DNA of 64,000 nucleotides, from contig JBLDXI010000017.1 of assembly GCA_047495785.1 (NCBI GenBank), positions 1,426,001-1,490,000 of the forward strand, written 5' to 3'. A program made the position numbers and the translations under genes. This stretch comes from Lepidodermella squamata (Eukaryota > Animalia > Gastrotricha). The notes beneath the pieces are model-generated. The model made no database searches and was not told the origin of the DNA. It saw only the letters and a program-made list of their open reading frames with translations. Numbering within the stretch: the stretch's first letter is position 1; every line of letters starts with the position of its first letter. Positions 1,635 to 48,499 of the stretch are shown here, in pieces.

Positions 1635-1768
1635 GCCATAGAGATCAGATTAACGTGATTTTTAACATCTTGATGGAATTCAGCTTAAGCTGGCCTCATC
1701 GTTTTTCCAAGAAAAACAGCGGAAATTCTTCTGAGTGGGGCAGTCAACCTTGATCAAACCTGGTTCCC
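1635..1768 (+). pseudogene. 5' part of a decayed Cys-loop ligand-gated ion channel (nAChR-like) gene, interrupted by the Polinton
   Basis: Reads DQINVIFNILMEFSLSW, then after a frameshift VNLDQTWFP. Removing the element and one TSD joins this to FINHLNAA, resembling the IWxPDIxLxN motif. Confidence 0.45.
1763..1768 (+). repeat. 6-bp target-site duplication GTTCCC (left copy)
   Basis: GTTCCC immediately precedes AGGAGGATTCG; an identical copy follows the right end at 19659-19664. Confidence 0.95.
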
Positions 1769-1990
1769 AGGAGGATTCGTAACCGCGGATAAAAATTTAA
1801 ACGAAGACAAGGCTGACCTCGACATTTAAAAATATTAATTTTTTAAGTTCGATACCAATAGCTTAATATCATTTCCTTCCCTAATCCTAAGTCCTAAGTC
1901 TCAAGTCCTACTAGTCGTAGCAGGGGATAAAAAATTAAAACTAGGTCAAGGTCGACCTGGACATTTTTTAAGGCGGATACCACTGGGGTC
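1769..1990 (+). repeat. Left terminal inverted repeat (first 42 bp perfect, ~220 bp degenerate)
   Basis: aggaggattcgtaaccgcggataaaaatttaaacgaagacaa is the exact reverse complement of 19617-19658. Inner blocks (tctcaagtccta, gtcgtag, ggataccact) also match the right end. Confidence 0.9.
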
Positions 1991-2028
1991 TTTTCTAACA
2001 GGATCTACAACATTTATTAGTGTTAGAA

Positions 2029-2667
2029 CTATACAGGGAACAAAGCATCCAGATCTAGGTCGGTTAAAATCAGGTCAGTCAGTTCTTTCTCATAAACATC
2101 AGCGCAAAGTTTTACAAACGCACGTACAACAGAGAATCCATGATCTAGGCTGATCACTCCCATGACGTTGAATTTGTATGAACTAGGGAAAAAACTGAGT
2201 TTTATGTTGTTAATAGTAAATCTCATGGCGCTAAATGATTCAGGAATGTAAACTACTCGGAATCCTGGCATGTGTAACGAAGCGAAAGCTCTAAATAATG
2301 CAGATGCGTGAGAAAATCTAAAAGGTAACTGACCAGTGATAACAATATTTCGGATTTTAAAGTGACTGAAACTCAAATGTGGAATGTTAGTCCATTGTCT
2401 GAGTTTAAAAACGATTGATAATACTTTAGACTCGAACTCAGCAATGTCACGAAATCCCTTCCCACCAATAACAATAACATATCCAGTGGAGTAAACCATA
2501 GCAGTTATACGCACTACAAACCGAATTCGAGTAGTTACAGGGACTTGCCTGCTATCAAAATAGGTATTGACACCGTGATTAGCAAGGTGATGTAAATCAA
2601 TAGAGCATCCAAGGCTGAAAGTCGCAACAATGTTGGACACAGAAACATCGATATCATACGTTTGCAT
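2029..2667 (-). CDS. TATA-binding protein (TBP/TRF2)-like protein, element-encoded
   Basis: Two TBP repeats: SNIVATFSLGCSIDLHHLA...RITAMVYSTGYVIVIGGK and FKIRNIVITGQLPF...YIPESFSAMRF. Intronless, 212 aa. Confidence 0.85.
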   Translation of the reverse strand: MQTYDIDVSVSNIVATFSLGCSIDLHHLANHGVNTYFDSRQVPVTTRIRFVVRITAMVYSTGYVIVIGGKGFRDIAEFESKVLSIVFKLRQWTNIPHLSFSHFKIRNIVITGQLPFRFSHASALFRAFASLHMPGFRVVYIPESFSAMRFTINNIKLSFFPSSYKFNVMGVISLDHGFSVVRAFVKLCADVYEKELTDLILTDLDLDALFPV

Positions 2668-3581
2668 TTAACAAAACTAGGGATTGCTGGGCAGAAGGTC
2701 GGGAGTTCGGATCGTGAGCAAACAAAAGTAATAGGAAATCGAGCAAAGGCTTGTACTCGGCGATAGAAAAATGAGTTAAGTTCTCTAATGATCTAAAGAA
2801 AACATCAGGACATGAAGTTTTAAAGTTGACATCATCAAACAAAGTCACAGGGTTACAAGCAGTGAAAAACGGAGTTAAGGTAACAAGTTCGATGATAGAT
2901 GCAGCCAGAGACCAAATGTCAATCTTGTTAGTGTAGTTTGGTTTCGGGAAAACAATTTCAATCGCTCGATAGTGGAATGTGGTTACAGTGCCGGTCATTT
3001 CTCCGGAACAACCGGGATCGACTTGCTGACGTGCGATGCCAAAGTCGCCAAGGGAAACATCCAGCCAGCTGGTTTGAAGTAGAATGTTCTGCAGAAATCG
3101 CTTAGGGATAAGAAAACAAAGGTTGAAAATATCAAACCTGTGGGCAAACATCGCGGTGAATGATACCAATAGCGTGGACGTATGCTAACGCCTTCAACAA
3201 CTGACGCAACCATCGACGAACAAATGTCAGAGGCCAAGGACAGGAAATTAATCCCAATAGGCGTTTCATGTCCATGAGATGGCATTCTAACACAATAAAC
3301 GCACACTTGCCAGTAAAAATGAACTCGTGCATTCTAGACAGGAAAAAAAACATGTCAAGGGAATGCTGTAAGTCTGTAATGGCAACATACTTGACAACAT
3401 TAGGCGCGTCTTGCAAAAGCTGCAGACACTCAATTTCTCGATTGGCTGATTCCTGGCAAACGTGTTTGGTAATGTTAATCATCTTCACCGCAAATACTCG
3501 GTTGAGCCAATTGTTCCGCTGCAAACTCACACTGCCGAAGGATCCAGACCCTATAGGTCGAATGTAGTCGTAATTTTCCAT
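2654..3581 (-). CDS. CDK-like Ser/Thr kinase, 3 exons (3581-3391, 3333-3138, 3088-2654), ~273 aa
   Basis: MENYDYIRPIGSGSFGSV, FAVK, ESANRE, spliced HRDVCPQ^NILL, DFGIAR, TTFHYRAIE, IDIWSLA. GT-AG introns at 3334-3390 (57 nt) and 3089-3137 (49 nt) give one continuous frame. Confidence 0.88.
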
Positions 3582-3602
3582 ATTTAAACCAACTCACTAG
3601 AA

Positions 3603-4862
3603 ATGAGCGAACACAAGAAAATGGTAGATGAAATCGACGAGAAACTTCGGCCAATCTACTTCAACCCGGCAGAAAAGGGCAGTCTCGGCAGCGTTGCAGC
3701 TCTCTACAGATCGTACAAGGCTAAATACCCCGATGGAAAGATAAGGTTGCAGCAAGTACGGAAATGGCTTGGCGAACAACGAGCATGGAGCGTATACAAG
3801 CAGGTAGCGACCCGGAATCGGATCACGAGGAAGGTTGCATGCTTCAGCAGAAGGAGTTTGTTCGCAATGGATTTGATGGACACGCGGAACGTAAAAGAGG
3901 AAAACGACAATGTTCAGTATCTTTTAACAGCCAAAGATACGTACAGTCGATATGCCTGGGTGCAAACGATGCGTAACAAGACCGGGCCTGAAACTTTGAG
4001 AGCTTTAAAAATAGTCATGAGGGAAGCGAAACAGAAACCTTATGCTGTAGTATTCGATCGAGGCTCGGAATTTTTCAATAAGCATGTCGAATCGTACCTG
4101 AAATCTGAATCAATTCATTATTATGCCACAAATTCAGAAAAGAAAGTCCCTCAAATTGAATCGTTCAACAAACTATTGAGGATGAGGCTGGCTAAACTGG
4201 CAATAGCACGAAATGACACACGATTCATCGATGATTTGCAGGATATAGTTAAGGTTTACAATAACAGTATTCACTCGTCAACAAAATTCACACCATCAGA
4301 GCTGTATAATGACGACGAAACAGGGAGAAAGATCGCAAGCGAGAAAGAGTTGAATCTCGAGATTTTCGAGGATAGCCCTAGGCAGTTCGTAGCATATGAA
4401 AACGTATTCGGCAAGGTGAAGCGTGGAAGAGAGAAAACACAGCCGCCTGCATTTAAGTTGGGCGACGTAGTTCGGATATCATCAGAGAGGGGAGTGTTTG
4501 ATCGCGCTCGCCATTTCACATACACGGACGAATATTTTAAAATAGCGCGAGTGATTAGACCAGACAAGTACGGACCATACACATATAAACTGTACGAATG
4601 GGATAAGGAAAAGGGCGATTACACTGAACCGGTGGCTGGTGTATTTTATCGCCACGAGCTTCAGAAAGTAAAACTTCCAGACGAATATTTGATAGATGAA
4701 GTGGGTAAAGAAAAGCGTAAATTCAAAGACGGAACAACTCGAGTTTTAGTCAGTTGGGTTGGGTTTCCAAAATCACAGAGTTCGTGGGAACCAATAGATC
4801 AAATTAAATCGGTCAAAAATGCATATATAAAGCGGTCAAAACCACAGCGGAAACGAGAATAA
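3603..4862 (+). CDS. Retroviral-like (c-int) DDE integrase with C-terminal chromodomain
   Basis: DDE residues in AMDLMD, VFDRGSEF and IESFNK; YNNSIHSS; FKLGDVVRI; chromo-like VLVSWVGFPKSQSSWEP. Confidence 0.93.
   Translation: MSEHKKMVDEIDEKLRPIYFNPAEKGSLGSVAALYRSYKAKYPDGKIRLQQVRKWLGEQRAWSVYKQVATRNRITRKVACFSRRSLFAMDLMDTRNVKEENDNVQYLLTAKDTYSRYAWVQTMRNKTGPETLRALKIVMREAKQKPYAVVFDRGSEFFNKHVESYLKSESIHYYATNSEKKVPQIESFNKLLRMRLAKLAIARNDTRFIDDLQDIVKVYNNSIHSSTKFTPSELYNDDETGRKIASEKELNLEIFEDSPRQFVAYENVFGKVKRGREKTQPPAFKLGDVVRISSERGVFDRARHFTYTDEYFKIARVIRPDKYGPYTYKLYEWDKEKGDYTEPVAGVFYRHELQKVKLPDEYLIDEVGKEKRKFKDGTTRVLVSWVGFPKSQSSWEPIDQIKSVKNAYIKRSKPQRKRE
4824..4832 (+). promoter_or_regulatory. TATA box (TATATAAAG) upstream of the Arg-rich peptide
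   Basis: Exact TATATAAAG ~30 nt before the ATG at 4862; the same motif recurs before other structural genes. Confidence 0.5.
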
Positions 4863-4942
4863 TGTCTGGTCCAAGACGAGCAGTCCGTAAACGAAAATAC
4901 ACCGCACGGCGCAAGCGACACACACGGCGGCATCGGCGATAA
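4862..4942 (+). CDS. Protamine-like 26-aa Arg/Lys-rich peptide (MSGPRRAVRKRKYTARRKRHTRRHRR)
   Basis: ATG overlaps the integrase stop (TAATG) and the stop abuts the next ATG. 15 of 26 residues are R/K. Confidence 0.6.
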   Translation: MSGPRRAVRKRKYTARRKRHTRRHRR

Positions 4943-5212
4943 ATGCGCGCAACCACATCGCTCCCAAGCCGTATTGCTTGTGCAATAGAGCATCAAGAAT
5001 CAAGAGGAGAGCTGAAGCGGGCAAATAGTCCGGAATCCAGCACAATTAGTAGTAGAATAGCAGCAAGCATCAAAAGAAGACGGAAAGGCTTCGGAATCTT
5101 GACGCTATTAGCGCTGTTTGTTACATATTTCTCAATTGAAATATACTGGTCTTGGAGCGACAGACTAATTCATTGCATCGCACTAACAGCAGGTCGTAAT
5201 AAAACAGTATGA
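4943..5212 (+). CDS. Small predicted single-pass membrane protein (89 aa)
   Basis: KRRRKG followed by hydrophobic FGILTLLALFVTYFSIEIYW. Exactly fills the gap and overlaps the penton start (ATGA). Confidence 0.5.
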   Translation: MRATTSLPSRIACAIEHQESRGELKRANSPESSTISSRIAASIKRRRKGFGILTLLALFVTYFSIEIYWSWSDRLIHCIALTAGRNKTV

Positions 5213-7007
5213 ACACACAGCAAGAATTCCTGCTATACTTGCCTTCGAATGCGTCAAATGACCTATTTCCCGACAACACGCCCTCGTCGTACCGAGTGAA
5301 GTTGGCTAATGACATTGATCTCGGCACAGTTGGTAAGATAGTAAATTTAAAAGTTTGTTGTATAGAATGCATAAATTGAGCGTAATAGGTCAGTGGGAAA
5401 TGGGATTAGTAGAATTCAATGGGCCTTCGGCGTGGGAATCGCTGGAGCCGACGAAATTCTACGTGTTCGATTGCGGTTGGCTGGAAGGAGACAAGACCTC
5501 TGACCCGTTCGAATCGAAGCAAATGTTTGAGTGCAAAGTCGGAGGGGTGTATTACTCGAACATTGAGGAACTGCTGGAACACATGGTAAAGGAAATCAAA
5601 TCGATCACATTGGACATCAAGTTAGATTATACGAGTTTATCGAATCGTGTATCGATCAAGGTGGTGAAAGGTCACTGGGGAGTGTTCATACCAAGAGATC
5701 TCGCCCAAGTCTTGGGATTTCCAGACGCGTTCATAGTGTATCACATGTATCCTGATGGCTCGTCAGACGAAGTTGAACGGATAGGGAGGGTGTTCAGATA
5801 CATGCTAGGCTATGTCGTTCACGGGTACCGACAGGAAATACCATATCGACCGCAACCTGACAACCTTATTACTGGGAACAAGGTTACATATATTGGTCAG
5901 TTGTTTAAGAAGGGAACGGTCCGAGTCCGCCGATCAGCTGATGACGGAGACTGGGAATTAACACCACAACTGTCACCGAAGAGGCAGAAAAACAGTGAAA
6001 CCAGAAGCGCAGTGCCAGATGGCGCAAATGCGATAGATGAATGGGGGATCAGTGAGCCAGAAAACCCAGAGGATAATCAGGATATAGAACAGCATGAAGA
6101 CGCGGCTGCTGAATTGGCTACTAAGCCACCCAATCAAGTAGCAGCGGCTTCCCAGCCGGCAACCTCCCAGTCTTCGAGTCAGGGCTATGACGCTGCAGAT
6201 GAAACCAAACCGTCAACACAGAACCCTGTTCATACAACCTCACAGCCGACCGGTCAGAGCGTCGATGCTCCAGTTGAGACTAAATCGACATCTCAGAACG
6301 CTAATCAAGCTGCAGCTTCCCTGCCGGCGGGTCAGCCCACGAAGCAGTTATCGCAGAACGCTAGTGATCAGACACCCCCCTCGGGACAGAGCTCCTCTGC
6401 TGCAGTTGCTACCAAGCCGACAACACAGAACCCTGATCAGGTCGCTGCTGTTGCCAAGAAGCAAGCATCAAAGAACGTTGATGCTCAGGTGGCCTCCGCG
6501 AGACAAACCTCCACCGCTGCAGCTGCCTCCAAGCAAGCAGAAAATCAGAACCAAGCAGCTACAAGTGGCAAACCGACAACGCAGAACGCTGCTCCAGTTG
6601 CTAGCAAGCCGACTAGCTCAAAGGCAACAATGTCAGAATCGGAACCTGTAGAACGTGTCATAGCAGTCGTCGATTACACATACACATTTCATCATGAACA
6701 AAGGACGGCAACATTTTCGCCACAGTTGGATTACGGCATGCCGTTCCTATTTCTGTATACAGATGTTATTGATGATGTGTATGTCGGGAATACTCGAACG
6801 CCCCTGCTGCGTGTAATACCGACAGAAAAAGCGAGTGACAAGAGCAGTTTCTTCTCTAAAACATTTGAAAAACCCATATTTGTTCCGATTAAGCGTCGTG
6901 TGTTATCCGTAATTGAAATTCAGATATATAAAGACTCAGGGTTACCTGTAAAATTCGTCAGTGGTAAAGCAGTCATCTTAGTGCAAATTAGACCTATAGC
7001 TAAATAA
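5209..7007 (+). CDS. Minor capsid protein (penton) with a large low-complexity insertion; intron 5333-5388
   Basis: Spliced N-terminus MNTQQEFLLYLPSNASNDLFPDNTPSSYRVKLANDIDLGTVG^QWEMGLVE and C-terminal FLYTDVIDDVYVGNTRTPLLRVIP are typical Polinton penton motifs. Confidence 0.88.
6925..6933 (+). promoter_or_regulatory. TATA box (TATATAAAG) upstream of the core-protein gene
   Basis: Exact motif ~85 nt before the ATG at 7018. Confidence 0.4.
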
Positions 7008-7017
7008 AGAATAAATC

Positions 7018-7485
7018 ATGCAATCAGCTGATGCATACGAAGCCTTTTTGTTACAGCAAAGTGGTTATGGCATAGAACCTTTTCGCGGCCAGTCCATTGT
7101 TTTTCCCACATATCAGGTATGAAAGATGACGAGTACCTACCAAATGAAGCTGTATTGCGTATGTCGCTAATAGACAGGGAATGGTTTCGGGAGTGTTGCA
7201 GCTGGGTTTTTCCGAAACCACATAATTCCACTTCTCGGCCCCATATTTCGCAACTTATCCCATACGACGGCGAATATTGCTACCGACCTGTTGGAAAACA
7301 ATAACGCGAATCCAAGGGAAATACTGAAAAAGAGAGCTGTAGAAGGACTGAAAGGAGTTGCCAAAGACGTAATAACCAAAGTTGGGTCTCAAATCGGGAG
7401 CGGCAAGCGTCATCGCCGTCGGCAAAAGAAGAAGCCAGCGGTGAATAGGAAGAAGAAGAAGACCGCGAAACGGGTCTATTTTTGA
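7018..7485 (+). CDS. Polinton basic core-protein precursor (136 aa; intron 7117-7173) with QxGxG motifs
   Basis: MQSADAYEAFLLQQSGYG...YQ^TGNGFGSVAAGFFRNHIIPLL...QIGSGKRHRRRQKKK. Three QxGxG sites and a basic tail. Confidence 0.75.
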
Positions 7486-7492
7486 AAAAAAG

Positions 7493-7501
7493 TATATAAA
7501 G
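7493..7501 (+). promoter_or_regulatory. TATA box (TATATAAAG) upstream of the major capsid gene
   Basis: Intergenic exact motif 37 nt before the MCP ATG at 7538. Confidence 0.6.
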
Positions 7502-7537
7502 GGTGCCGAACACTTGTAGAATAAACATCCATTAGCC

Positions 7538-8827
7538 ATGTACGTCCATCCGTCATCGGAGAATGCCATACGCGCCGAGCTCAACGTGTTCACGTTAAAC
7601 CCGACGCAAGTGGAAATAGAGAGTAATTACATTACAGAATACGGCCCCGTGTCAGCAATAGCCAATCAGTCGCGAATCGATTTTGACGTCCCACCCAGCA
7701 ATGATTGGACCGATCTCAGTCGGTCGTACGTTGAAATAACGTGCAAAATCACGCACGTTGACACAGCCAAAGCGTCTGAGGAGATCAAATGTGGCCCAAT
7801 AAATCTGCTGTTGCACAGTATGTTCAGCCAGATCGATATGAGCATCAACAATACACAGATTAGCGAACCGGCTCCGACTTACAACTACAAGGCCTTCATT
7901 TCGACCTTACTGAGCTATGACCTTGCTGTAAAAGACAGCTATTTGGCGCTGCAAGGATACTATGCTGACGAGGCCGGCAAAGTCAGCGATCCTGCTGGGA
8001 AAGGTCACACAAATCGACTTGCATGGGCCAAAAAGGGTGAAATGGTTCTTATCGGCAAGCCGCATTTGGAGCTATTCTCTCAACCAAAATTCCTAATTCC
8101 AAACACGCCATTCAAGCTAACGTTTGTGCGAGCATCGGATGCGTTTGTTCTAATGCAAGCCGAGGCTGAAAAAAACAAGTACACGTTGACTGTCACCGAT
8201 GCCAAACTCAAGCTGCGGCGTGTTCGCGTTTCACCGCAATTCACGCTGGCACTGAACCGCACCCTGACAAAAACAACAGCGAAATACGGTGTTAACAGGT
8301 CTTTTATAAAGATCCTAAACTTGCAGAAGGGATCCTTGAACTATAACCTGGGCCATGTTATTCTGGGGAAAATTCCTAGGCGATTAGTAATGTGCTTTGT
8401 AAGCGATAAAGATTTCAAAGGCCATTCGAACAGCAGTCCTTACAATTTCAAAAATCCTGGCGTTCAACGAGTCTCCGTTACGATTGACAGTGAGCATGTC
8501 CCGAATAGTCCCCTTGAAATCGGCGAAAGTGAAAATAATGCAGCCCGTGCATTAAACGCCCTCCGAGAGACAATTTTTCCATATTCGAGCAAAACTAACG
8601 GCATCAAGTTGTCGGAATATGCCAAGGACGGATTTTCGTTCCTAGGGTTCGACTTGTCACCAGATTCGAGCCGTAGCGCTTACAGTCTAGTAAAAAGCGG
8701 AGTCTTGAACATTGACATTCTACTTAAATCAGCACTGGAAGACAATCTCATTCTATTGTGTTACTTTGAAACCGATCAAGTGATCGAATTGAATTTCGCA
8801 AGAAACGTTTTGGTGGACTTTACATGA
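7538..8827 (+). CDS. Major capsid protein (double jelly-roll)
   Basis: RAELNVFTLNPTQVEI, DLSRSY, PINLLLHSMFSQID, GKIPRRLVMCFV, SPYNF, FDLSPD. 429 aa, intronless. Confidence 0.92.
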   Translation: MYVHPSSENAIRAELNVFTLNPTQVEIESNYITEYGPVSAIANQSRIDFDVPPSNDWTDLSRSYVEITCKITHVDTAKASEEIKCGPINLLLHSMFSQIDMSINNTQISEPAPTYNYKAFISTLLSYDLAVKDSYLALQGYYADEAGKVSDPAGKGHTNRLAWAKKGEMVLIGKPHLELFSQPKFLIPNTPFKLTFVRASDAFVLMQAEAEKNKYTLTVTDAKLKLRRVRVSPQFTLALNRTLTKTTAKYGVNRSFIKILNLQKGSLNYNLGHVILGKIPRRLVMCFVSDKDFKGHSNSSPYNFKNPGVQRVSVTIDSEHVPNSPLEIGESENNAARALNALRETIFPYSSKTNGIKLSEYAKDGFSFLGFDLSPDSSRSAYSLVKSGVLNIDILLKSALEDNLILLCYFETDQVIELNFARNVLVDFT

Positions 8828-9402
8828 ATCTTCAACTGAATACCCTTCAATTGGACTGTCTAATGTCTTGTGACAAAGTCATTAGTAAACTTGCTGTAAG
8901 AAAGACTATTCCCTGGGACTATTTACCGCAATATCAGAAAATGAGCGAGCGACCGATGGCGCTGATAGTAAATACCGACGCAGCTGGCCAGCCTGGAAGT
9001 CACTGGCTATCAATATACATCCCGCATACGTTGGAACCAGCGTCGCTATTTGACAGCTATGGACAGCGAGGATTTTTCTACAATGAAGCGATTGAAAAAT
9101 TCTTGAACGAGATCAATGGACATGGTTATTACAACTACAATGGGCGAAAATATCAAAGCGAAAACACAGCGGTCTGTGGCTATTACGCTTATTGGAGCTT
9201 GCACTGGCTATCTCGTGGCGCAACGCTGGAAAAACTAGCATCAATGTTGAATCAGCAACACGTTTCGGATACGTTTGTTGTCCAACAAGTGACGAAGCTA
9301 TTTAAAGTGAGCAAAGCTGAAAACATGTCGCGTTATTTTGGCAACTGCAAGGGACATCAGTCATGTCAAGCAATGTGCCGGCAGAAACTGACTTTTCGCT
9401 AA
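8824..9402 (+). CDS. Adenain-like (C5/Ulp1 clan) cysteine maturation protease
   Basis: IVNTD..GQPGSHWLSI (His), FDSYG (Asp), YQSENTAVCGYY (Gln/Cys). Confidence 0.92.
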   Translation: MNLQLNTLQLDCLMSCDKVISKLAVRKTIPWDYLPQYQKMSERPMALIVNTDAAGQPGSHWLSIYIPHTLEPASLFDSYGQRGFFYNEAIEKFLNEINGHGYYNYNGRKYQSENTAVCGYYAYWSLHWLSRGATLEKLASMLNQQHVSDTFVVQQVTKLFKVSKAENMSRYFGNCKGHQSCQAMCRQKLTFR

Positions 9403-10055
9403 GCTTGGAGGCGCCGTTTTGTTCACTTGTCATCGGTCCGAGCGGCGCCGGAAAGTCATGGCTTATCAGACAAATGTTGAATGATCCTGAATCTATATCC
9501 CCGCCGCCGAAAGCTATTCTATGGTTCTATGGCGTTGAGACAAAAATGCACGCGGAGGTCAGGGAAGAAGTGGAGAAAAGTCGAGGCATAACGATTGAAT
9601 TTAGAAAAGGCTTGGAAAACCTCAATTTTGACGAATTTGAATCGAGCGCAAATGCAGGCGATCATACGCTGCTCATCATAGACGACTTGTATGATACTGG
9701 AAGAAATGACCCTAAAATTCATCAATTATTCTATCGGTATTCGCATCACATGCAGCTGTCCGTGTTTTTCACGCAACAAGCAATATTCAGCAAAGGAAAA
9801 GTTTCCAAGGAGATGACCTTGAACGCCAAATACTTGTTCATTTTCCGCCATCGGGCAGATCTTACGGCATTTCGCTATCTTGCAATGCAGTTGGAACCGT
9901 TGCGCTGGCGTTTTCTAGTTGAAAGCTTCGAAATAGAAACTAGTAAAGGCGGACATCACTACTTGTTAATCGATCTGAGCCCAAACTGCCCTGAATATAT
10001 GAGATACAGGACTGGCGTAGGGAGCTATCCGGGAGTTGTTTATGTGCCGAAATGA
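9363..10055 (+). CDS. A32/FtsK-like genome packaging ATPase
   Basis: Walker A GPSGAGKS, Walker B LLIIDD, YSHHMQLSVFFTQQ, YLLIDLSP...RYRT. Confidence 0.93.
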   Translation: MSSNVPAETDFSLSLEAPFCSLVIGPSGAGKSWLIRQMLNDPESISPPPKAILWFYGVETKMHAEVREEVEKSRGITIEFRKGLENLNFDEFESSANAGDHTLLIIDDLYDTGRNDPKIHQLFYRYSHHMQLSVFFTQQAIFSKGKVSKEMTLNAKYLFIFRHRADLTAFRYLAMQLEPLRWRFLVESFEIETSKGGHHYLLIDLSPNCPEYMRYRTGVGSYPGVVYVPK

Positions 10056-10070
10056 ACCAATAAAAATGTA

Positions 10071-10079
10071 TATATAAAT
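10071..10079 (+). promoter_or_regulatory. TATA box (TATATAAAT) upstream of the small virion-protein gene
   Basis: Intergenic, ~30 nt before the ATG at 10110. Confidence 0.5.
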
Positions 10080-10109
10080 AAGGAGTTTTTTTTTATCTAA
10101 TGCTTGATC

Positions 10110-10531
10110 ATGCGAAGTATGCGTAAAAAGCTTGACAAGTCACACAGAATTTTAGGTTTCATCAAGGAGATTCTCAGAGCAAAGACTTACGACAGACGTC
10201 GGCAACTCTTATCAATAGCCCCGGATAGCGTGATAAAATTAATTTGCGAGATTTGTCTCAACCTCGCCAATAAAAACCTGCCGATACCGCCAAACCAGGC
10301 GAGGAAATTGCGTAAATTTAGAAAATCAATCGAGAAATTGAGCAAAACCGATACGACAGTCAACGGTAATCGGGAATATATTGTTCAAAAAGGCGGTGCA
10401 GCGTTTGTAGTGCCTCTACTGACAGCCGCAGCTGGTTAGTGTTTTTTCTTTATGACCACTAGTTTCCAAGCGCAAATTTAGGTTTGTTGCCCACCGTTGT
10501 TGAATCCATCATCAAAGCAGCGCGCAAATGA
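10110..10531 (+). CDS. Small basic Polinton protein with a QKGG site and amphipathic C-terminal helix (intron 10435-10481)
   Basis: LICEICLNL...LRKFRKSIEKL...IVQKGGAAFVVPLLTAAAG^LLPTVVESIIKAARK. Stop overlaps the next ATG (ATGA at 10528-10531). Confidence 0.7.
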
Positions 10532-11484
10532 TCAAATCAACCTCATCAACATCAGGTCAGTACGCTAAGCGGTACAGTTTGGTGCCTGGGACACTAGTTG
10601 ATGGATCGAAATCAACCGTTGAAACGGAAAGCAAGCGGATAATTAAGGAGGCTTCTGAACCGACACAGAAAGGACAACTTAAGCGTAACGCAATGCAAAT
10701 GTTAAATGCGTTATCGGACAGTAATGAAGATGACGCGCGCGAAAAGTTGTATAAATTTAACTCGGCTTTTCGCGACTTCAAGCGAGCAGTAAGAGAGTTG
10801 AAAATTGCTGAATCGACCAAACCTGAGGAAGATGAGGACGAGGAGGAAGATGAAGATGAGGAAGTGGAAGCAGAAGAAAATCAGGTCCCAAGTCCTAAGG
10901 AATCCTCAACACCTATTTTGCGGAGGGCAACAAAGCTTAGTTTCATCAAAACAAGTCCGAAACCGGAACAGTTGAACGGAAACGGCGATGGAAATGAAGA
11001 TGAAATTCCAGTTAAAATTCCTAGAGTAGAAAATGAGAATAAGAAAATTGTACTAGAGAAACTCGCGGATCAGACAATTATTGATCAATTCCCAACAGAA
11101 CAACGTCGAAAAGAAGTAGCTAGGATTTTGAACCATTTGAGGGGACAAGACAAACCAAAAAATGTATTCATTACGGACGACAATGCTAAAATTGTGCTTA
11201 TGAACAACACTGGAACCTTGTCAGATTCCTGGGACTTGGTCGATTTTCTGGACAAAGCCACAAACAAGAAGATGAATATGAGCGAAACAACAAAAGGAAG
11301 AATCCGTAATTTTGTACGAGTTGGACAGCTGAACGCGACTAATCCGTTAGTTTCCGCATCTCCTCGTGACATCCGAAGCCGCAATGATACAAAGCAAAAG
11401 AAGAATAAGGCTCCTCATCCAACAAACAGTCAACCCGGCCAACAGAAGGGAGGTAAATGGTTAGCATGGACTCCTAAAATTTGA
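10528..11484 (+). CDS. Polinton hypothetical protein with an acidic tract and terminal QKGGKW
   Basis: 318-aa open ORF, poly-E/D tract, C-terminal QQKGGKWLAW. Confidence 0.7.
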   Translation: MIKSTSSTSGQYAKRYSLVPGTLVDGSKSTVETESKRIIKEASEPTQKGQLKRNAMQMLNALSDSNEDDAREKLYKFNSAFRDFKRAVRELKIAESTKPEEDEDEEEDEDEEVEAEENQVPSPKESSTPILRRATKLSFIKTSPKPEQLNGNGDGNEDEIPVKIPRVENENKKIVLEKLADQTIIDQFPTEQRRKEVARILNHLRGQDKPKNVFITDDNAKIVLMNNTGTLSDSWDLVDFLDKATNKKMNMSETTKGRIRNFVRVGQLNATNPLVSASPRDIRSRNDTKQKKNKAPHPTNSQPGQQKGGKWLAWTPKI

Positions 11485-12395
11485 AATCGATCAAAATCGG
11501 ACTAAACTTCAGCTTGTTCTGACTGTCACACATGCTAGCGTTGATGAACTGTGTGGTTTCCGATCCCGTTTCTCCGTGACCTAAATAAAGAGACCTGAAC
11601 AGGAAATAATTAGCCTTTTCGAAATATTTACTATCGTGGCAATGTCCAAAAACATGAACTTTTGGTTTGACTCGGGACAGAACGTGATTAGTCAGGGCCA
11701 GGCATCCCATTCGATCTCCAGCAAGAGTTTTGTCCAGGATTCCCAACGGAGGGCAATGTGTTACCAGTACATCGGTGTCGGCTGGAATCATGCGCCATTG
11801 TTCATCAATATCATTGCCGCGATTTCGCGTGAACGCTGAATGCCAGCTTTCCACGGTTGGAGTCCTACGGCACTGATCTCAGTTTCAGGGTTAAGTTTGT
11901 ATGAATGTGTTTCTTACCATGGAGAACCGTAAATCTTCACATCGTCAACCGTAATCGAGTTGTCTTGAAGATAAGTGCAGTTTTTGAAATCATATTGCCG
12001 ATCTTGAAGACAACGATCGTGGTTTCCAGCAATCGCGATAATTGCTCGAAAGGATGCCTTGATTTCGGACAATTGGGCATCAAAAGCTTTCATTTCTTGC
12101 ACGGTTCCAAATTTAGAAATATCACCAGCATGAACCAAAACATCAGCAGTCGCAGCAGCTCGTACCAACGGCAAAAAGTTCGCGTTGTGTGAGTCCGACA
12201 TGCACAGTAGGCGAAGAGACTTAGCCCCATCGAATATGAGGCGTGGCTTTTCCAGCTGGACAAAAGGCTAAAACGCGTGTTATTATTATTACGATTTGAC
12301 ATTTTTCTGTGATAAAAGATCCAACTTACTTCAAATGATTTCACTATTCCCCACGCAAAATTTGGATGCATTGGCGACGTAAAGCTAATCTTCAT
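11474..12395 (-). CDS. Calcineurin-like metallophosphoesterase (MPPED-like), 4 exons
   Basis: LRLLCMSDSH, VHAGD, IAGNHD, YGSPW^TP, VLVTHCPP, HVFGHCH, FINAS. Introns at about 12268-12329, 11865-11917 and 11581-11631. Confidence 0.88.
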
Positions 12396-12456
12396 TGCAT
12401 AAAATAGCCTAAAATAGATTGGTACAAGAAAGCATTAATTGCATCTTTTTAATTGG

Positions 12457-13554
12457 TCAAAAATCTGCATCGACAGAAAAAGTGCGATCGCCAGAAGTTT
12501 TCGCGCTCATCACGCCCATCTTCTGATACTCGCCGACTCGTTTCTCGAAAAAGTTGGATTTTCCCTCGAGCGAAATGTTTTCCATAAAGTCAAAGGGATT
12601 CAAAGTATTGAAAACCATCGGACATCCAAGCTCGCCAAGAAGACGGTCAGCAACAAACTCAATATACTGTTTCATCAGAGTACAATTAATACCAATTAGA
12701 GCACAAGGTAAAGCATCTACAAGGAATTCTTGTTCAATTAGGACAGCCTCGCGAATTATATTAGTGATACGCTCGGCACTAGGTCGATTCATCAAATGAC
12801 GGAACATTAGACAGGCAAAGTCGGTGTGTAAACCCTAGGTTCGGAGACAATTGAGAACGTAGAATCGAGAGTGAATAAATCAACATACCTCGTCGCGGCT
12901 AATGAGTTCGTTACTGAAAGTCAAACCCGGCATAAGCCCGCGCTTCTTTAGCCAGAATATGGAAGCGAATGAACCGCTGAAGAAGACGCCTTCGACAGCG
13001 GCGAAGGCGACAATTCGTTCTCCAAAAGTAGACGACTTATCCCCTATCCATTGCAGAGCCCAGTCAGCCTTTTTCCTTACACATGGCAATGTCTCGATAG
13101 CATTGAAAAGTAAATCCCTGAAGAAGTGAAAATTTAAAAAGCGAAAACCAAGACAGACTACGAACCGTTCCGAAGGATCTCTGATATAAGTGTCAATTAG
13201 AAGGCTATACATTTCAGAATGTATATTTTCTATAGCAATTTGAAAACCATAGAAACATCTCGCCTCAGGAATCTGAACCTCTTGAGCGAATCTTCCCACG
13301 AGGTTCTCATTCACTATTCCATCACTTGCAGCAAAAAATGCGAGGACGCGTGAGATGAAATAGCGTTCGTCAGGCTTCAACTTCTCCCAGTCAGTCCGAT
13401 CATCAGATAAATCAACCTCCTCAGTGGTCCAAAAAGACGCCACTGCCTTTTTGTACATCTCCCAAATAGCGGGGTAGCGAATAGGTAGAATAACGAAACG
13501 TCGAGAGTTATTTCGGAGCAGGGGCTCGTCAACAAAGATGGGGACACTCATCAT
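12457..13554 (-). CDS. RRM2: Ribonucleotide reductase small subunit (class Ia R2), 3 exons
   Basis: [48 protein letters not shown]^[15 protein letters not shown]-terminal FSVDADF. Introns at 13118-13165 and 12835-12888. Confidence 0.95.
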
Positions 13555-13628
13555 TGATTATGCTAACTGCTCTAAAGTTTGAGAAAATCCAAGTTATCAG
13601 TCAACTGCAGTTTTCATTCAAAACGCCT

Positions 13629-13985
13629 TCAAATCACTCCGATAAAAAACTCCAAACGCGATTTATCGAGACTAAGCTGTCTGAGATACGGGTGGGAAAA
13701 ACGAAGTGACTTGGACAGGCAATATTTACCGTTACTCAATACCAATCTCCCAGGAATGGAGGGCTTACCAGGCATAAATCCGGGCCAGTCAAACCAAAGC
13801 CAATTCAAGAACTCGCCGACTGTTTCCGCCCGGCTGTTGATTGGCCAATGTACTCTCTCGCCGCTCACCAATATCAAACCTATTCGCAGTTGTCGCGATT
13901 TGTATGTATCGCTCAATACATCGAAAGGTTGCAGCGTTTCATTGCTGCCGCGGCTGCTAGCGAGAGAAGGTGGTGGCGCGTTCAT
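13629..13985 (-). CDS. UBL3/MUB-like ubiquitin-fold protein, copy C (intronless, most divergent)
   Basis: LRIGLILVSGE (cf. UBL3 NLRLILVSGK), ETVGEFLNWLWFDWP (cf. HVYDNWP), RLVLSNGKY. No CAAX or di-Gly end. Confidence 0.6.
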   Translation of the reverse strand: MNAPPPSLASSRGSNETLQPFDVLSDTYKSRQLRIGLILVSGERVHWPINSRAETVGEFLNWLWFDWPGFMPGKPSIPGRLVLSNGKYCLSKSLRFSHPYLRQLSLDKSRLEFFIGVI

Positions 13986-14053
13986 TAAATAATGGTTACT
14001 CTAAAATCACTAATTTTTGAAAGAAACCCAAACATTCAGGCATATTTTATAGT

Positions 14054-14306
14054 TTAGGATTTAGGATAGAAACAAATTGCAGTTTCCCTCTCAGATAGAC
14101 GATAAATAATAGCGTCGGTTGAACCCGAAGTGAAAACGCAGGCTTTGCATGTGCTGTTGCGGATGAACATTATCTAGAAAATAGAAACGTAAGGCGTGAT
14201 CATTTCGTCGAAACTAACTCACGCGTAGGTTCCCGACTTCTCTGATTAATAGTTTTGGCTTGAGACCCTTTGGCAATCTGAGTTTCAATCTCCACTTTTG
14301 AGGCAT
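14054..14306 (-). CDS. Small two-exon hypothetical protein (67 aa; intron 14174-14222)
   Basis: MPQKWRLKLRLPKGLKPKLLIREVGNLR^IMFIRNSTCKACVFTSGSTDAIIYRLSERETAICFYPKS. Canonical GTGAGT donor and TTTTCTAG acceptor. Confidence 0.5.
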
Positions 14307-14359
14307 TATTTTTTTTATCGTCCTAATAAATGATCTAAGATGTAAAACAACTCAGAAAA

Positions 14360-14738
14360 TTATACCAGCCAATTATATTTGTTCAAAGATTCCTTGACTT
14401 GGATAAAATCAATGCAATCCAGTTCGACTGCTCCTGAATCCCAATATCCTGCAAGAATCCCCTATACAAGTTTTTTTTTCATGAGAATTTCGCCCTTGGC
14501 AAGAAAACTTACTTATAGGAGCAAAATTGCGCTTCAACGGTAAGCCCTTGTGGAGCAGGCGAAGGTTCATGATATGCGGCTTCAATCCCCAGCTTTCAGG
14601 CCATTCGTGGTACAATTGGTAGATAATGTCCTGTACCGTATAGGATTCGGAACAGTGCATTATGATCTGGTCTCCGTTCCGCCAATTGAGCTTGACCACA
14701 AATCCAGTATTAGGTGATCCGCTCGCTGAAACTTTCAT
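14360..14738 (-). CDS. UBL3/MUB-like ubiquitin-fold protein, copy B (intron donor 14512; acceptor 14449 or 14462, so end 14360 or 14409)
   Basis: YTVQDIIYQLYHEWPESW...NLRLLHKGLPL (cf. UBL3 DIAKHVYDNWPMDW...ILRLIYQGRFL). Confidence 0.7.
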
Positions 14739-14789
14739 TCTTCAATTTCTAAAAATAACAAAAGGAAAGAACGATTAATTAACAGCATT

Positions 14790-15153
14790 TTACTTGCGGA
14801 GACGGTCAGGACGAAAATCAGATTGAAGCTTTACTAAATAAGTACATATTTTCATTGTTGGACTTGGAATACGACGACTCAATCCTGGAAATTAGAGAAT
14901 GTTAGCAAAGCAAGGCTATAGGTTTCATCCAGTTTTTGATCAACTAACCTTTCATCAGTACCGTTTTCCGAACAGGCCGACCTTTGCATTGTAGTCGCAA
15001 TTGCTGAAAACCAGGCTTTGGCCCCCAATTTGACGGCCACGCGGCCTTCATCTCTTTGACGCAATCAGTAATTGTCGCAGATTCATCAAAAGATGAGCAA
15101 AAGGATGATCCGTCCGCTAGTACAATCCGACAAACGTAATCGGCCTTTATCAT
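14790..15153 (-). CDS. UBL3/MUB-like ubiquitin-fold protein, copy A (99 aa; intron 14885-14948)
   Basis: CRIVLADG...FDESATITDCVKEMKAAWPSNW...QLRLQCKGR. The intron is at the same position and phase as in copy B. Confidence 0.72.
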
Positions 15154-15241
15154 CTTAAGAAACCTAAACTAAAAATTGAAAAAAACGATAATTTAATATG
15201 CACATTTAATATTTACAATTGTACATCAACTTTTGCGGTAT

Positions 15242-15724
15242 TCAGGGAAAATTCGCATCGGAATTTGGAGAGGGCAAAAAGGTACATTTACAGTTCAACT
15301 TGACCTTCTTAGGTATCTCCGGTCTCTTGTCACATTGAGCCTGGTGTAGCAAAACGGTGGAAAACTCCAGTTTAGCTGAACAGCCGTACTTTTCAAAAGC
15401 GCAAGTGAATATTAGGCGTGAGATCAATCGTTCAACAACTGCAGGACCTGGAACAAGATCGATGCACATGAAGTCAGCTCGGCATATCGGACATGAAGCT
15501 GGCGTGAAAATGTTGACTCGGTATTGTCCACGACAACATCGATCCCCCCATCGACAAATGCAAAGCTCACAAAACACGTGCTGACAGCCGACTATGTAGA
15601 CTGGAGAGTTCATCACTCCAAGACAAATGCTGCAGGTAATTTCCTTTTCGATGAATTCGAACTGAGTTTTGAAATCAGGTGCAACTTGTTCGGGCGGAAC
15701 GCTGGCTGAATTTTTTTCTAACAT
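15242..15724 (-). CDS. RING (C3HC4) plus TRAF/SIAH-type zinc finger protein, putative E3 ubiquitin ligase
   Basis: CSIC...CQHVFCELC...CPICR followed by CAFEKYGC...HQAQC. The ATG directly follows the pPolB stop. A small 3' intron is possible. Confidence 0.85.
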   Translation of the reverse strand: MLEKNSASVPPEQVAPDFKTQFEFIEKEITCSICLGVMNSPVYIVGCQHVFCELCICRWGDRCCRGQYRVNIFTPASCPICRADFMCIDLVPGPAVVERLISRLIFTCAFEKYGCSAKLEFSTVLLHQAQCDKRPEIPKKVKLNCKCTFLPSPNSDANFP

Positions 15725-18700
15725 CTAAGGAAGAAGATTTGTACATTTAGACCTGTAGCCATATGGGACAGATGTGAAGGTTTTAGGATCAAAAACGCGC
15801 TTGTCATTGAGATGCGGGGAAACTCGCTTATCAAGTTTTTCCAAGCTGACCGATGCCGGGACGTGTCGCCTGCGGAACATTGATTGCTCTATTGACATGC
15901 AAGCCCCAGTTGATGATTCATTCAAATAATTGAGTAGCAGATCAACCAAAGACTCGTGCGACATTGCTGTCCCTGCCACGCTTTGGCTGATGCCTTTGAA
16001 CTTGAGTTCCGTCCTGAAATTTGACCTGAAAAGTAGTAACTAGGCTACGCTGTATATCGATTTTCTAACCTGAGATTTGTGACGAATGAATAGGATTTTG
16101 GCGATATACAAACCCAGGATTTGATGTACTCTCCATCCTGTAGCTCCGATTTATACTGCCCTAGATATGGCCCATTCGGTATTCTATACTCGCCTTCTCG
16201 ATATGTGTAAATCAAGGAATCGGCTAAAAAAGAGTGAGGGATTACTTTTTTTTCGCGATATTTTTAATTCTCGGCAACTTACTATCACAGTATACGAGGC
16301 GGGGGCCCAACCGAGCCATCTGCGAGTTAAAGGTGTAGCGTTTGCGTAATTTTAGCGCAAGTTGAGCTTGCTTACCTCTTCGTAAATCATAATACGCGCG
16401 TAGGATGTTATGAAGGACGCTATAATTTCCGAATTTGTCGCGCAAATTTGTTCGTAATCCGGTGCGTCTGAATACGACACTCGGACTGTCTGAAACTCGT
16501 CATCAGGCCCTACAGGCTGGATTGAATGGACGATCTTGTTCGGCGATTCCAGCAACTCAATCAATTGAGTTGGCGAACTGAGATAAACGACCGTTGAGTT
16601 GGTGCTTTTGAGGCAGAAGCGGCCGTAGAAACTGACATCCCAAGCTTGGTAAGAGATAACTATGGTCAATCCGAGAACTTACCTATTTTGCAATGTCTTG
16701 GAAATCTGTCGGATTGCTGGGTTAGGAATAGCTTGCCGATCGAGATCTATTCCATACCTTTCGCGGCATTCAGAGATGTACTGTTCCAAATCTATCGTCG
16801 GGTCTAGTTTTGTGTGTTCCAGCTTAAGTTTCTGCAACGAGATGATGAATTCTTTGAACTGAAGATTGCTCTTCTTTTCAAACTCCCAAATCTCGTAAAT
16901 TTCAAGCAGTTGATAGCCGTATTTGGAAACAGCCAGTCTTAGTTCTTCGCTAGTCCAAACCGAAGTTATAGCGCGCTGATCTAGGCTATGATTGCATGGG
17001 GCTGATCTATTCTTCTCCAGGTAACACGTCTTACAAGAAATAAAAACCAGCCTAGAGTCATCCGGCGATTTCCATGGCAAACATGGAATTAAAAGTTCGG
17101 GATTCGGAGCGACTTTTGCCGACACTAGACCGAACGAGGGCTGAGTTGGATGAAGGAACCTGGCCCTGAGCTTGGAATCGTTTAGTCGCCACCTTAAAAC
17201 ACGAGGTGAGACATCGCCGCAAGGAAATAATTGCGTATATAAAATGTATGGATACATGGAGTTAATGTCGGCATATAGCAAGCTGGTTTCTGAATCTTTT
17301 TCGAAAAAGCAACGAAAGTTTTCGCACCTCCCACCCTGTTGTCATAATTTTTCGGAGACTTAATGTGATTAAGGCGGTTACAGCGAGCTTACCAATAGCG
17401 CGGATCTTGGTTTTATCGGAGGAACAACGTTAACAACTTGCTGCAATGTTCTATCTATATCCGGGTTCTCAGCTAGAAATGCGTTGAATTCGCAAGAATA
17501 AACTGTCGTAAGCTGATATCCGCTCTGCCTAATTTTCGCTTCCCTTGCTGCTGTCTCATTTGATAGCTCACCGAACGTTCGTCTCAATACGACATTGAAC
17601 TTGTTTTCCGGACAACAAGTAGGATGGCCGTGTATGGTGCAACCTATTTTTGCGATTTACAAGCTATACTATAGTTCAAGTCGAAGGGTTGACAGCACTC
17701 ACCGTGATATTCGAGGACGTGTTCTACATTGCCTGTCGACTTGTTTCGGATTACACCGTCCGCTTTTATCACGGATTTATCATGCATGACTAACCGGCAT
17801 TCAGACCCGTTGAGCGCTGACTCAATTTCTACGTTGTGGGTTTTGCTGTAGTAGAGAAGCCATTTCAAGCTCTCTTGACTTGTGATGTCCTTCAGCGCAA
17901 GACCCGCTGGGCTGATGATGGAAATCGTTTTTGGCTGCATGTACTTTATCTACGCAAGTAAAACCGGAGAATTTCCTGTAATTTTTCTAATAGCAAGCCT
18001 TACGCGGTATATTATATGCGAAATCGATGAGAGGGTTAGATAATGAAAACAATCTATCCCGTTTGGAGCGTATTCGCAAATCGAAAGCTTGGCGATTAGC
18101 TTTTTGAATCTACCTGTCGCTATTCGCAATATAACGACATCTTGAACGCAGTATGTATAAGTCTCATTTTTCACGATGTATTGTGCTTGGAGAGAGCGTT
18201 TTTGACTAATGAATTCTTCCAACTCAGATATTTCGCGTTGAGACATGTTGCCCGTATCATAGCTTTCAATCCCAGGCCAAATCGTAAATATTTTTGTTAA
18301 ATTTTCGCGAGTGTGCAGCTTATGAGGATACGTTAGCTTTTCGATACCGTCGATCCCAAATGCAGCGGGAAGATTGGCTAATTTAGTCTGGAAATAATTG
18401 AAGCTGTCGATAAATCTTAAATTGGACTCATTTTCACATTTGGAATGCTTCTAGGTTGGAAAATATTACCTAGGGCCGCCTTTGATTTTAAGCTCAAGTA
18501 TCCTCCCTGCCCTCTCTATTGTAGTGAACTTCAAGTTCTGGTCCTGTACGTATCGCAACACAAATATTGTGTCGAATTTCCCTAATAAAAAGAATTATCA
18601 AATAAAAAATTGAATTAAATCGTCATAAATTTTGCGCGATGAAACTTGTTACCTCCATAATGTGAAATGCAGGTGAGGTTTTTGAATTCATCGCGGCAAA

Positions 18701-19369
18701 TGAATTCCATGAACTCAGCCATTGCACGAGTCTCATGATAAAAGAAAAGTTGGCTACAACCGTTCTTGCAAATTGGATTGCCGTTTTCAGGATAGCGCCG
18801 AATTTCAAGGCCACAGCACTCATTGCATGCGAACTCGCCAACGACGGTAGTCGGATAGAACTCGCCGTTTTCTGTTAGAACGCATTCGAGATCGAAGTAT
18901 AGGACTTTTCCTGGCTCAGGTGTTGTTTTCAATTTAGGTTTTGACCAATAGCATCGATGACCGGGTTCTAGTAAGGTTTTACAGACTACGCATTTACGGC
19001 CGGGGCAGTTATGTTTCAGCAATTTGTTGCGGGTCTTGACTTCGCCGCAACCTCGACATCGGACATACTTATCGCAAATCTTAGCCCTTACATGCGACTC
19101 ATAACACTGCGCACCGAAAAAGAACCGATTGCATCTAGAGCAACAAACAGTCGCGGCTTCGGAGCATCGGTTTAACCTTTTTGGCCTAATTATTGTCCCA
19201 CTCCCAGTCTTTTCAGCCGATGAAGGATTGACCCTCAATCGGTATTGCCCAGGTATTCATCGAGTGGCCGCTGTTTTCACCTAAGAAAAATTCACGACGT
19301 GTTAAATTCATTTTGTTTATATTCCAAATAGAAAACGTCATTTCCTTGAAGAATAGGACTCTGCGCCAT
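15725..19369 (-). CDS. Protein-primed family B DNA polymerase with Cys-rich N-terminus and inserted VSR-like nuclease; at least 9 introns; 5' end uncertain
   Basis: ExoI YFDLE, ExoII HYGG^KFD, FIDS, ExoIII YCVQDV, EYHG^CTIHG, motif A ADINSMYP, motif B KTLQNS^FYGRF, motif C YCDT^DS, KFKG, terminal PYGY. Removing nine GT-AG introns from 19238-15725 leaves 3009 nt in one frame. Confidence 0.92.
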
Positions 19370-19432
19370 GCTAGGATTGGAAAGAATTTGACCGTTACTG
19401 ATAGGATATAGGACTTTGTTTTGGAATTGAAC

Positions 19433-19658
19433 GGCCCTAGTGGTATCCAGCTTCAAAAATAATTAAATTCAATTATTTCCTTACCCTACGACATATTAGG
19501 ACTTGAGAGTCTTCAAGGACAGTGGGAAACTCTAGTAAGGAATGATCCTAGTGATACTCGCTTTAAAAAATGATTTAATGATTTAAATTTAAAGAAATTA
19601 AATGTTAAGGCCGACTTTGTCTTCGTTTAAATTTTTATCCGCGGTTACGAATCCTCCT
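19433..19658 (-). repeat. Right terminal inverted repeat
   Basis: 19617-19658 is the exact reverse complement of 1769-1810; degenerate similarity extends inward to ~19433. Confidence 0.9.
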
Positions 19659-19664
19659 GTTCCC
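19659..19664 (+). repeat. 6-bp target-site duplication GTTCCC (right copy)
   Basis: Immediately follows ...GAATCCTCCT. Confidence 0.95.
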
Positions 19665-47658: not shown

Positions 47659-48499
47659 TCAAGATATCTTACACCTTGGCCATTGTTTTTCTTTCGATGT
47701 CAATGGAACGTAGATAACGTCGAGTAGATCTTGCTTCGAAATTGACCCATCAGCGTTTTTATCGATTTGCTGCAAAATTTGGTTTTCGCCCTCTGGACCA
47801 ACCGGAATCACAAGTCGGCCGCCTGGCGCCAATTGATCAATCAGGGCCTAAATAATAAGATTGAAAAAAAATATTAAAAAATAATCAAATTTAGGCCCAC
47901 CTTTGGAATCTCAGGTGCAGCAGCTCCGACATGAATAGCGTTAAAAGGAGCCGCTTCAGGGTATCCTAGTCGCCCATCGCCCTGCAAGAGCTTCATGTTA
48001 CCCGACTCGAGGAGGGCGTGCAATTTCGGGTCTTTTCGAACGTTAGCATGTGACTCATCTACGAGTTGTTTGATGTGTTCGATGCCTACAACGTGGCCTG
48101 TTGGGCCAACCATGAGGGTCATGGCACAAGTCAAGTAGCCCGAACCCGAGCCGACATCTAAGGCTCTCATGCCTGGTTGAAGGTGGTTCTTCAAAACCTC
48201 CAAGACGTGGCCATGCTGTATGAAAAAAAATAAAAGATTTAGATAAGAAATGACGGAGGAGTCTACCATATGAGGGGCACTAATCGTTGCGGCGTAACCA
48301 ATAGGCTGTGGCGAGTCCATGTAAGGGTGATTTTTGGCGAAAAGGCCGCGATCAACAGCTGACATGGCCTCGATAACCCGCTGTTCACGAATAACCCCAC
48401 TTTCTATCAGAAAATTCGCTAGATTATAAAAAATTCAATCAATTCAATAAAGCAACTTTTCAAGTGGTTGATCAGTTCAAGGTTCTGAGACCGGCTCAT
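47659..48499 (-). CDS. PCMT1: Protein-L-isoaspartate O-methyltransferase
   Basis: [20 protein letters not shown]^[54 protein letters not shown]. The N-terminus may extend upstream. Confidence 0.92.

Follow-up and report, generated by a model that had tools for sequence, protein, structure and literature searches.

Two tandem genes with a suggestive likeness to UBL3 and a neighbouring RING gene in a Maverick/Polinton-like element of Lepidodermella squamata

Do integrated virus-like elements carry genes of their own with which to act on the ubiquitylation of their host? The question is raised by four open reading frames (ORFs) in a 64,000-nucleotide (nt) stretch from the gastrotrich Lepidodermella squamata (GenBank assembly GCA_047495785.1, contig JBLDXI010000017.1, positions 1,426,001 to 1,490,000 of the forward strand), hereafter the window, in whose numbering all positions are given. 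The four ORFs stand in series on the minus strand, from 15724 down to 13629 (ORF list): a RING gene followed by three smaller frames, A, B and C. An earlier note, drawn from the letters of the DNA alone, had taken them for a viral module made up of a gene for a ubiquitin ligase (E3) with a RING and a TRAF-type zinc finger, and three copies of a gene of the UBL3/MUB type. By sequence, A and B are true paralogues that go back to a tandem duplication, and their kinship with UBL3 is suggestive, not proven. On statistical tests C is not UBL3-like. The whole run lies inside an integrated virus-like Maverick/Polinton element and not in host DNA. That the run makes up a module for ubiquitin control is plausible, yet unproven. 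The four features are as follows, all on the minus strand (UBL, ubiquitin-like).

15242..15724, minus strand: RING (C3HC4) protein of 160 amino acids (aa) with a possible TRAF/Sina-type zinc finger, in one exon; from Pfam
14790..15153, minus strand: UBL gene A, exon 1 15153-14949, intron 14948-14885, exon 2 14884-14790 with stop; from a Rad60-SLD_2 match, its paralogue B, splice signals and codon usage
14360..14738, minus strand: UBL gene B, exon 1 14738-14513, intron 14512-14449, exon 2 14448-14360 with stop; from a Rad60-SLD_2 match, a model of exon 1 and codon usage
13629..13985, minus strand: ORF C, 118 aa, a doubtful third copy, far more diverged and without an intron at the equivalent site

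Genes A and B and the third frame

Pairwise comparison of the first exons aligns A and B without a gap over 59 residues at 31% identity (E=2e-13), a score reached in none of 5000 shuffles. A carries the motifs IVLADG, WPSNW and LRLQCKG, and B carries WPESW and LRLLHKG. Each gene is interrupted by a GT-AG intron of 64 nt that lies in phase 1 and exactly 10 codons past the KG, the phase and place that the earlier note had given; the ORFs, motifs and splice signals that it listed were all found where it had put them. Since intron position, phase and length are common to both genes, the duplication that the note had proposed for A and B is well founded. The donor and the pyrimidine-rich acceptor read GTTAGT and TTCCAG in A, and GTAAGT and TTGCAG in B. 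Beyond the intron, the frame of exon 2 stays open to the stop for 30 codons in A and 28 in B, and the predicted proteins are of about 100 aa each. Short GT..AG introns are taken to be real in this element because the gene for the small subunit of ribonucleotide reductase (RNR) has a 54-nt intron, with both halves of that gene matching Pfam. The codon-usage score of gene A is positive in its own frame only, and that of gene B is positive as well. An intact frame, splice signals and positive codon scores at just 31% identity together argue for long selection.

No further copy of the UBL genes was found in the 64-kb window, either with a profile of A and B run against 2051 six-frame ORF pieces or by a repeat search. 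The stretch between B and C (14306-14054) was considered as a truncated fourth copy and rejected: BLAST aligned it to neither A nor B, the A+B profile scored it at E=6.7, and Pfam gave no match.

The motifs of C are LILVSG and a bare WP. It is marginally similar to B in pairwise comparison (E=0.003, shuffle p=0.003), and the same comparison with A gave nothing. Aligned with hhalign, the A+B profile reaches C at E=0.041 over 28 columns; among the six-frame ORF pieces of the window, the same profile places C at E=18, within the noise. Neither whole nor in pieces does C match anything in Pfam or the Protein Data Bank (PDB), and its AlphaFold2 (AF2) model is unusable, with a predicted local distance difference test (pLDDT) score of 35. 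The codon-usage score of C is 0.048 per codon, barely above that of an antisense ORF at 13579-13992. This plus-strand ORF of 137 aa covers C almost entirely and has nearly as good a codon usage, and the near-equal scores leave the coding strand of the stretch ambiguous. It is possible that C is a third copy that has decayed or diverged strongly. Of the three UBL3-like copies in the earlier note, A and B may keep that standing through matches at E~1e-3 to Rad60-SLD_2, their sole ubiquitin family, below its cut-off, while C failed every family test.

UBL3 likeness, the RING gene and a proposed role

The first exons of A and B carry a signature of the UBL3/MUB type, with two strands, a helix ending in WPxxW and then LRLxxKG. 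The Pfam family Rad60-SLD_2 (PF13881), whose cut-off is 23 bits, is matched by exon 1 of A with 19.6-19.7 bits (E=0.001) and by exon 1 of B with 18.7-20.0 bits (E=8e-4 to 2e-3). The exons were searched separately, and these scores cover positions 4-61 of the 111 in the profile, that is, its first half. Rad60-SLD_2 is the sole ubiquitin-fold family matched by either first exon, and the generic ubiquitin families of Pfam gave no match. Against the PDB, the A+B profile ranks the UBL3 structures 1wgh and 2gow first (E=0.097). The AF2 model of B exon 1, built with A as the sole other row of the alignment, has a pLDDT of 64.5, and its strand-strand-helix-strand-strand order is that of the first five elements of the beta-grasp. 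A closer relation of A and B to UBL3 than to generic UBL proteins is suggested for exon 1 by Pfam family and PDB rank; the structure search with the exon 1 model adds nothing significant to it.

Cellular MUBs are ubiquitin folds of about 120 aa without a di-Gly end and with a prenylated CaaX box (PMC4996978, Lu et al. 2016). A loop between helix 2 and strand 5, the lap-bar, with the consensus (K/R)xPFG, blocks access of the activating enzyme (E1) to the conjugating enzyme (E2), and a MUB in which this loop is mutated keeps E2 binding and loses inhibition (PMC4996978). The predicted proteins A, B and C end in RLRK, NWLV and IGVI, respectively, so that none has a CaaX box or a di-Gly end, in agreement with the earlier note. 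The lap-bar motif is likewise absent from the exon pieces of A and B, from C, and from the residues flanking both splice junctions. As they have neither CaaX nor lap-bar, A, B and C are not bona fide MUBs; for the same reason A and B are predicted to be soluble and would not block the charging of E2.

The last point bears on the function that the earlier note had in mind, in which A, B and C act as MUB mimics without the anchor and inhibit E1 charging of host E2s of the UBC8/UbcH5 type while the RING protein exploits the pathway. UBL3/MUB is indeed the only family resembled, and MUBs do inhibit the formation of E2~Ub (PMC4996978). That inhibition, however, depends on the lap-bar with its invariant Pro and conserved Phe, which is found in no piece of A, B or C, so that a charging inhibitor of the MUB kind loses its defining feature. 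As the family membership of C is moreover not demonstrable, we regard this explanation as very unlikely.

The RING gene adjoins A directly upstream on the same strand. Its C3HC4 RING domain is confirmed by sequence comparison, with scores above the cut-offs of two Pfam families (zf-RING_UBOX, 28.0 against 25.2 bits; zf-C3HC4, 23.7 against 21), and its matches in the PDB are the RINGs of TRIM proteins, BRCA1/BARD1 and TRAF6 (TRIM and BRCA1 to E=2e-06). The RING is followed by a finger of the form Cys-x6-Cys-x11-His-x3-Cys. As a TRAF/Sina-type finger this scores 19.4 bits with Sina_ZnF, below the cut-off of 32, and TRAF6 in the PDB aligns over residues 24-132 at E=0.0016. The earlier description as a RING and TRAF-zinc-finger gene is accordingly sound for the RING and falls short of threshold for the finger.

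Our best reading, a tentative one, takes A and B for soluble, UBL3-derived proteins that bind the backside of an E2 and work with the neighbouring RING protein. A UBL3-type ubiquitin-fold gene would have been acquired together with its intron and then duplicated within the element to give A and B. With the CaaX anchor lost and the Pro-Phe-Gly of the lap-bar absent, the products would be soluble and would leave E1 charging of E2 unblocked. Most likely, A and B would bind non-covalently to the backside of a host E2 of the UBE2D/UBC4-5 type, the surface on which ubiquitin docks and by which MUBs hold E2s of the group VI/UBE2D type. The front of that E2 would be taken by the RING of the element, and A and B would in this way assist or tune the element's ligase as cofactors. 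An arrangement of RING, E2 and UBL protein is the most economical one because of the RING gene upstream, the precedent of the RING-CH ligase MARCH1, which UBL3 serves as a specific cofactor (PMC9001657), and the recurrence of UBL domains in the cargo of nematode Mavericks (bioRxiv 10.1101/2022.07.12.499685). The fuller proposal, that the element encodes its own set for ubiquitylation control, in which two soluble proteins derived from UBL3 dock on the backside of the host E2 alongside a short RING ligase, is rather doubtful.

Several results weigh against this reading of A and B. All their family matches lie under the Pfam gathering score, and the first-ranked UBL3 match in the PDB is just at E~0.1. 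The model of B exon 1, a partial domain, gave no Foldseek match at E<=0.001 in PDB or BFVD, and UBL3 came at rank 37 in the PDB. The second exons of A and B and the tail of C have no detectable similarity to one another, and the exon 2 pieces matched no family. A profile search with A and B among 1.84 billion representative proteins found no true relative, and from this it follows that there is no conservation to speak for the two genes. Binding to an E2 and cooperation with the RING are steps that we purely infer, and the help that UBL3 gives to MARCH1 requires prenylation, which A and B could not undergo. The profile search did return two matches, both rejected as false (a bacterial Cna_B repeat protein and a protein of 6116 aa without any matched stretch). 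B, C and the RING protein were also run in word-based searches, which returned nothing; not even the window's own proteins came up, and the collection probably does not include the source genome. An ankyrin ORF of the host, looked up by exact sequence, was not found either.

Some of these results would suit a different origin, in which A and B form a family of small accessory proteins specific to the lineage and resemble UBL3 by chance, through the short tryptophan-proline motif. Bit scores of 18.7-20.0 against 23, a Foldseek search with nothing significant, and a large search whose sole matches were false and came from Cna_B repeats are all as expected from a fortuitous likeness. On the other hand, both proteins align over the first 55-58 positions of the profile, well beyond the motif, and to no other family, and the predicted order of secondary structure fits the first five elements of the beta-grasp. 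A chance likeness therefore seems to us quite unlikely.

A host origin without a function must also be considered: a UBL3-like gene of the host would have been captured with its intron, duplicated, and left to drift as a decaying passenger, with C and the interval that separates it from B as products of later decay. The absence of relatives wherever they were sought, the loss of the anchor and the lap-bar motif, the unrelated exon 2 pieces, the ambiguous coding signal of C, and the presence of an intron in the neighbouring RNR cargo gene all fit such a history. Neutral drift down to 31% identity should nevertheless have broken one or more of the features that A and B both retain, namely start codon, frame, splice sites, intron phase and length, WPxxW and LRLxxKG. 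We consider functionless passengers unlikely.

The Maverick/Polinton-like element

The viral setting assumed in the earlier note is seen directly in the ends and core genes of the surrounding element. Its terminal inverted repeats are perfect over 42 nt from both ends, and it is bounded by a target-site duplication.

1769..19658: Maverick/Polinton-like element of 17,890 bp containing the whole gene run; from terminal inverted repeats, target-site duplication and core genes
1763..1768: left target-site duplication, GTTCCC, 6 bp
19659..19664: right target-site duplication, GTTCCC, 6 bp
3603..4862, plus strand: integrase, rve core and chromodomain; from Pfam
9363..10055, plus strand: packaging-type ATPase, weak; from Adeno_IVa2 and AAA_22, both just under cut-off
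12457..13554, minus strand: RNR small subunit, the next gene downstream of C, with an intron at 12888-12835 (54 nt, GT..AG); from Pfam
15725..19238, minus strand: region of a protein-primed family B polymerase; from DNA_pol_B_2 on two pieces

The integrase scores exceed their cut-offs (rve 34.5 bits, Chromo 26.3 bits), DNA_pol_B_2 matches two ORF pieces at 3.2e-11 and 2.6e-07, and the Adeno_IVa2 score of the ATPase is 19.9 against a cut-off of 21. No sequence match in Pfam or the PDB was found for the large ORFs at 5355-9402. One of them, a 550-aa ORF on the plus strand (5355-7007), contains three degenerate 59-nt direct repeats (6174-6439), and its residues 80-175 resemble very weakly (E~0.4) a deubiquitinase/deneddylase of the CE clan; this ORF is a candidate for the adenain/Ulp1-like maturation protease that Mavericks are expected to have. 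The 64-kb window contains the element only once.

Accessory genes are unusually numerous in the element (kinase/TBP, metallophosphoesterase, RNR, RING and small ORFs). RING E3, UBL A, UBL B, ORF C and the RNR small subunit follow one another in this order, all on one strand. The RNR gene matches Ribonuc_red_sm on two ORF pieces (2e-78 and 1.6e-18), and together with a metallophosphoesterase occupies 11474-13554 on the minus strand. Cargo of nucleotide metabolism that carries introns suggests that cellular genes were taken up as DNA. Near the left end (2029-3581, minus strand), a protein kinase domain in two ORF pieces is followed by a TBP-like domain, an unusual cargo. Gene regions are divided among several ORF pieces (about 8 for the polymerase, 3 for kinase/TBP and 2 for the phosphoesterase). 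The region as a whole has compact genes, introns of 50-65 nt, and acceptor-like T-rich stretches with AG just before the starts.

In the gene run, a T-rich stretch ending in AG lies 0-30 nt upstream of the start codons of RING, A, B, C and RNR (13986-15800, minus strand), and these minus-strand genes are spaced only 50-90 nt apart. The two features together are reminiscent, by inference only, of trans-spliced operons. The octamer ATGTACAA has minus-strand copies at 13451, 15219 and 15739 within the module, two of them upstream of RING and of A. As a common upstream motif it was found unconvincing, since the window has 6 copies where 2 are expected, and one of them falls inside the RNR coding sequence.

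A few kb beyond the right end of the element lie short arrays and a direct repeat of 48 nt, with TCTAAACCGGAC as their unit (22988-23435). From about 30 kb onwards the genes are ordinary cellular ones (Fip1, NDRG, MBOAT, ankyrin, PCMT and an Akt-like kinase). Two ORFs among them, 47874-48365 and 50494-51015 (minus strand), both match protein-L-isoaspartate O-methyltransferase and look like a tandem host pair. An Rfam scan of the whole window returned nothing.

Meaning and comparison with known systems

If the UBL3 kinship is true, A and B would be the first proteins of the UBL3/MUB type in a virus-like element, and the literature searched yielded no report of a virus or Maverick with a protein of the UBL3/Rad60-SLD_2 type. 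They would also be natural MUBs stripped of both anchor and inhibitory loop, that is, separation-of-function variants that keep the fold. UBL domains in Maverick cargo are recurring and unexplained, and cellular UBL3/MUB proteins are among the least understood proteins of the ubiquitin fold. A UBL3-derived pair beside a ligase would offer a way to learn what UBL3 does through its backside-binding surface alone, and a view of the interplay of integrated virus-like elements with host ubiquitylation. As UBL cargo domains in Mavericks are already known, and the UBL3-type claim rests on similarity below threshold, the locus would be at most a variant of what has been described. Should the likeness prove spurious, what is left is one more group of orphan accessory genes.

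Large DNA viruses encode ubiquitin genes whose products closely copy ubiquitin, di-Gly end included. A and B would share with these the presence of a ubiquitin-fold gene in a viral genome, but are predicted not to be conjugatable and resemble UBL3. The RING protein, with its C3HC4 RING followed by a Cys/His finger, is built like the N-terminal parts of TRAF6, TRIM and SIAH. Unlike ligases of the TRAF and SIAH kinds, it has only 160 aa and lacks TRAF-C/MATH, a coiled coil and a substrate-binding domain, and its finger is sub-threshold.

Among Maverick genes, the closest parallel is with the N-terminal UBL domains of the WASP proteases and KRMA kinases in nematodes (bioRxiv 10.1101/2022.07.12.499685), as in both cases a module of the ubiquitin fold would form part of the accessory content. 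A and B might even be stand-alone equivalents of these domains without a special tie to the RING gene, acting on protein abundance or serving as recombining modules. In favour of this, UBL domains are modular and frequent in Maverick cargo, and the element also holds a kinase and other cargo. WASP and KRMA are, however, fusions with a protease or a kinase, whereas A and B each have a start and a stop of their own and stand alone beside a RING gene. Both end about 30 codons past the intron with no in-frame catalytic domain after, and no sequence similarity to the cargo domains, nor a relative of any length, was detected. It is thus highly improbable that A and B are such equivalents.

For A and B as UBL3-derived partners of the RING protein, the nearest known system is UBL3 with MARCH1 (PMC9001657). 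There, as would be the case here, a protein of the UBL3 type is paired functionally with an E3 of the RING type, although here the pairing seen is one of gene adjacency. UBL3-MARCH1 involves prenylation and a membrane ligase, whereas the genes described here have no membrane signal and the RING is of the C3HC4 type. With UBL3/MUB proteins themselves (PF13881; 1wgh, 2gow), A and B have in common a length of about 100-120 aa, the N-terminal strands, the WPxxW helix, LRLxxKG and the lack of a di-Gly end. They differ from them in having neither CaaX nor lap-bar, in scoring below the family cut-off, and in being tandem paralogues carried by a virus-like transposon.

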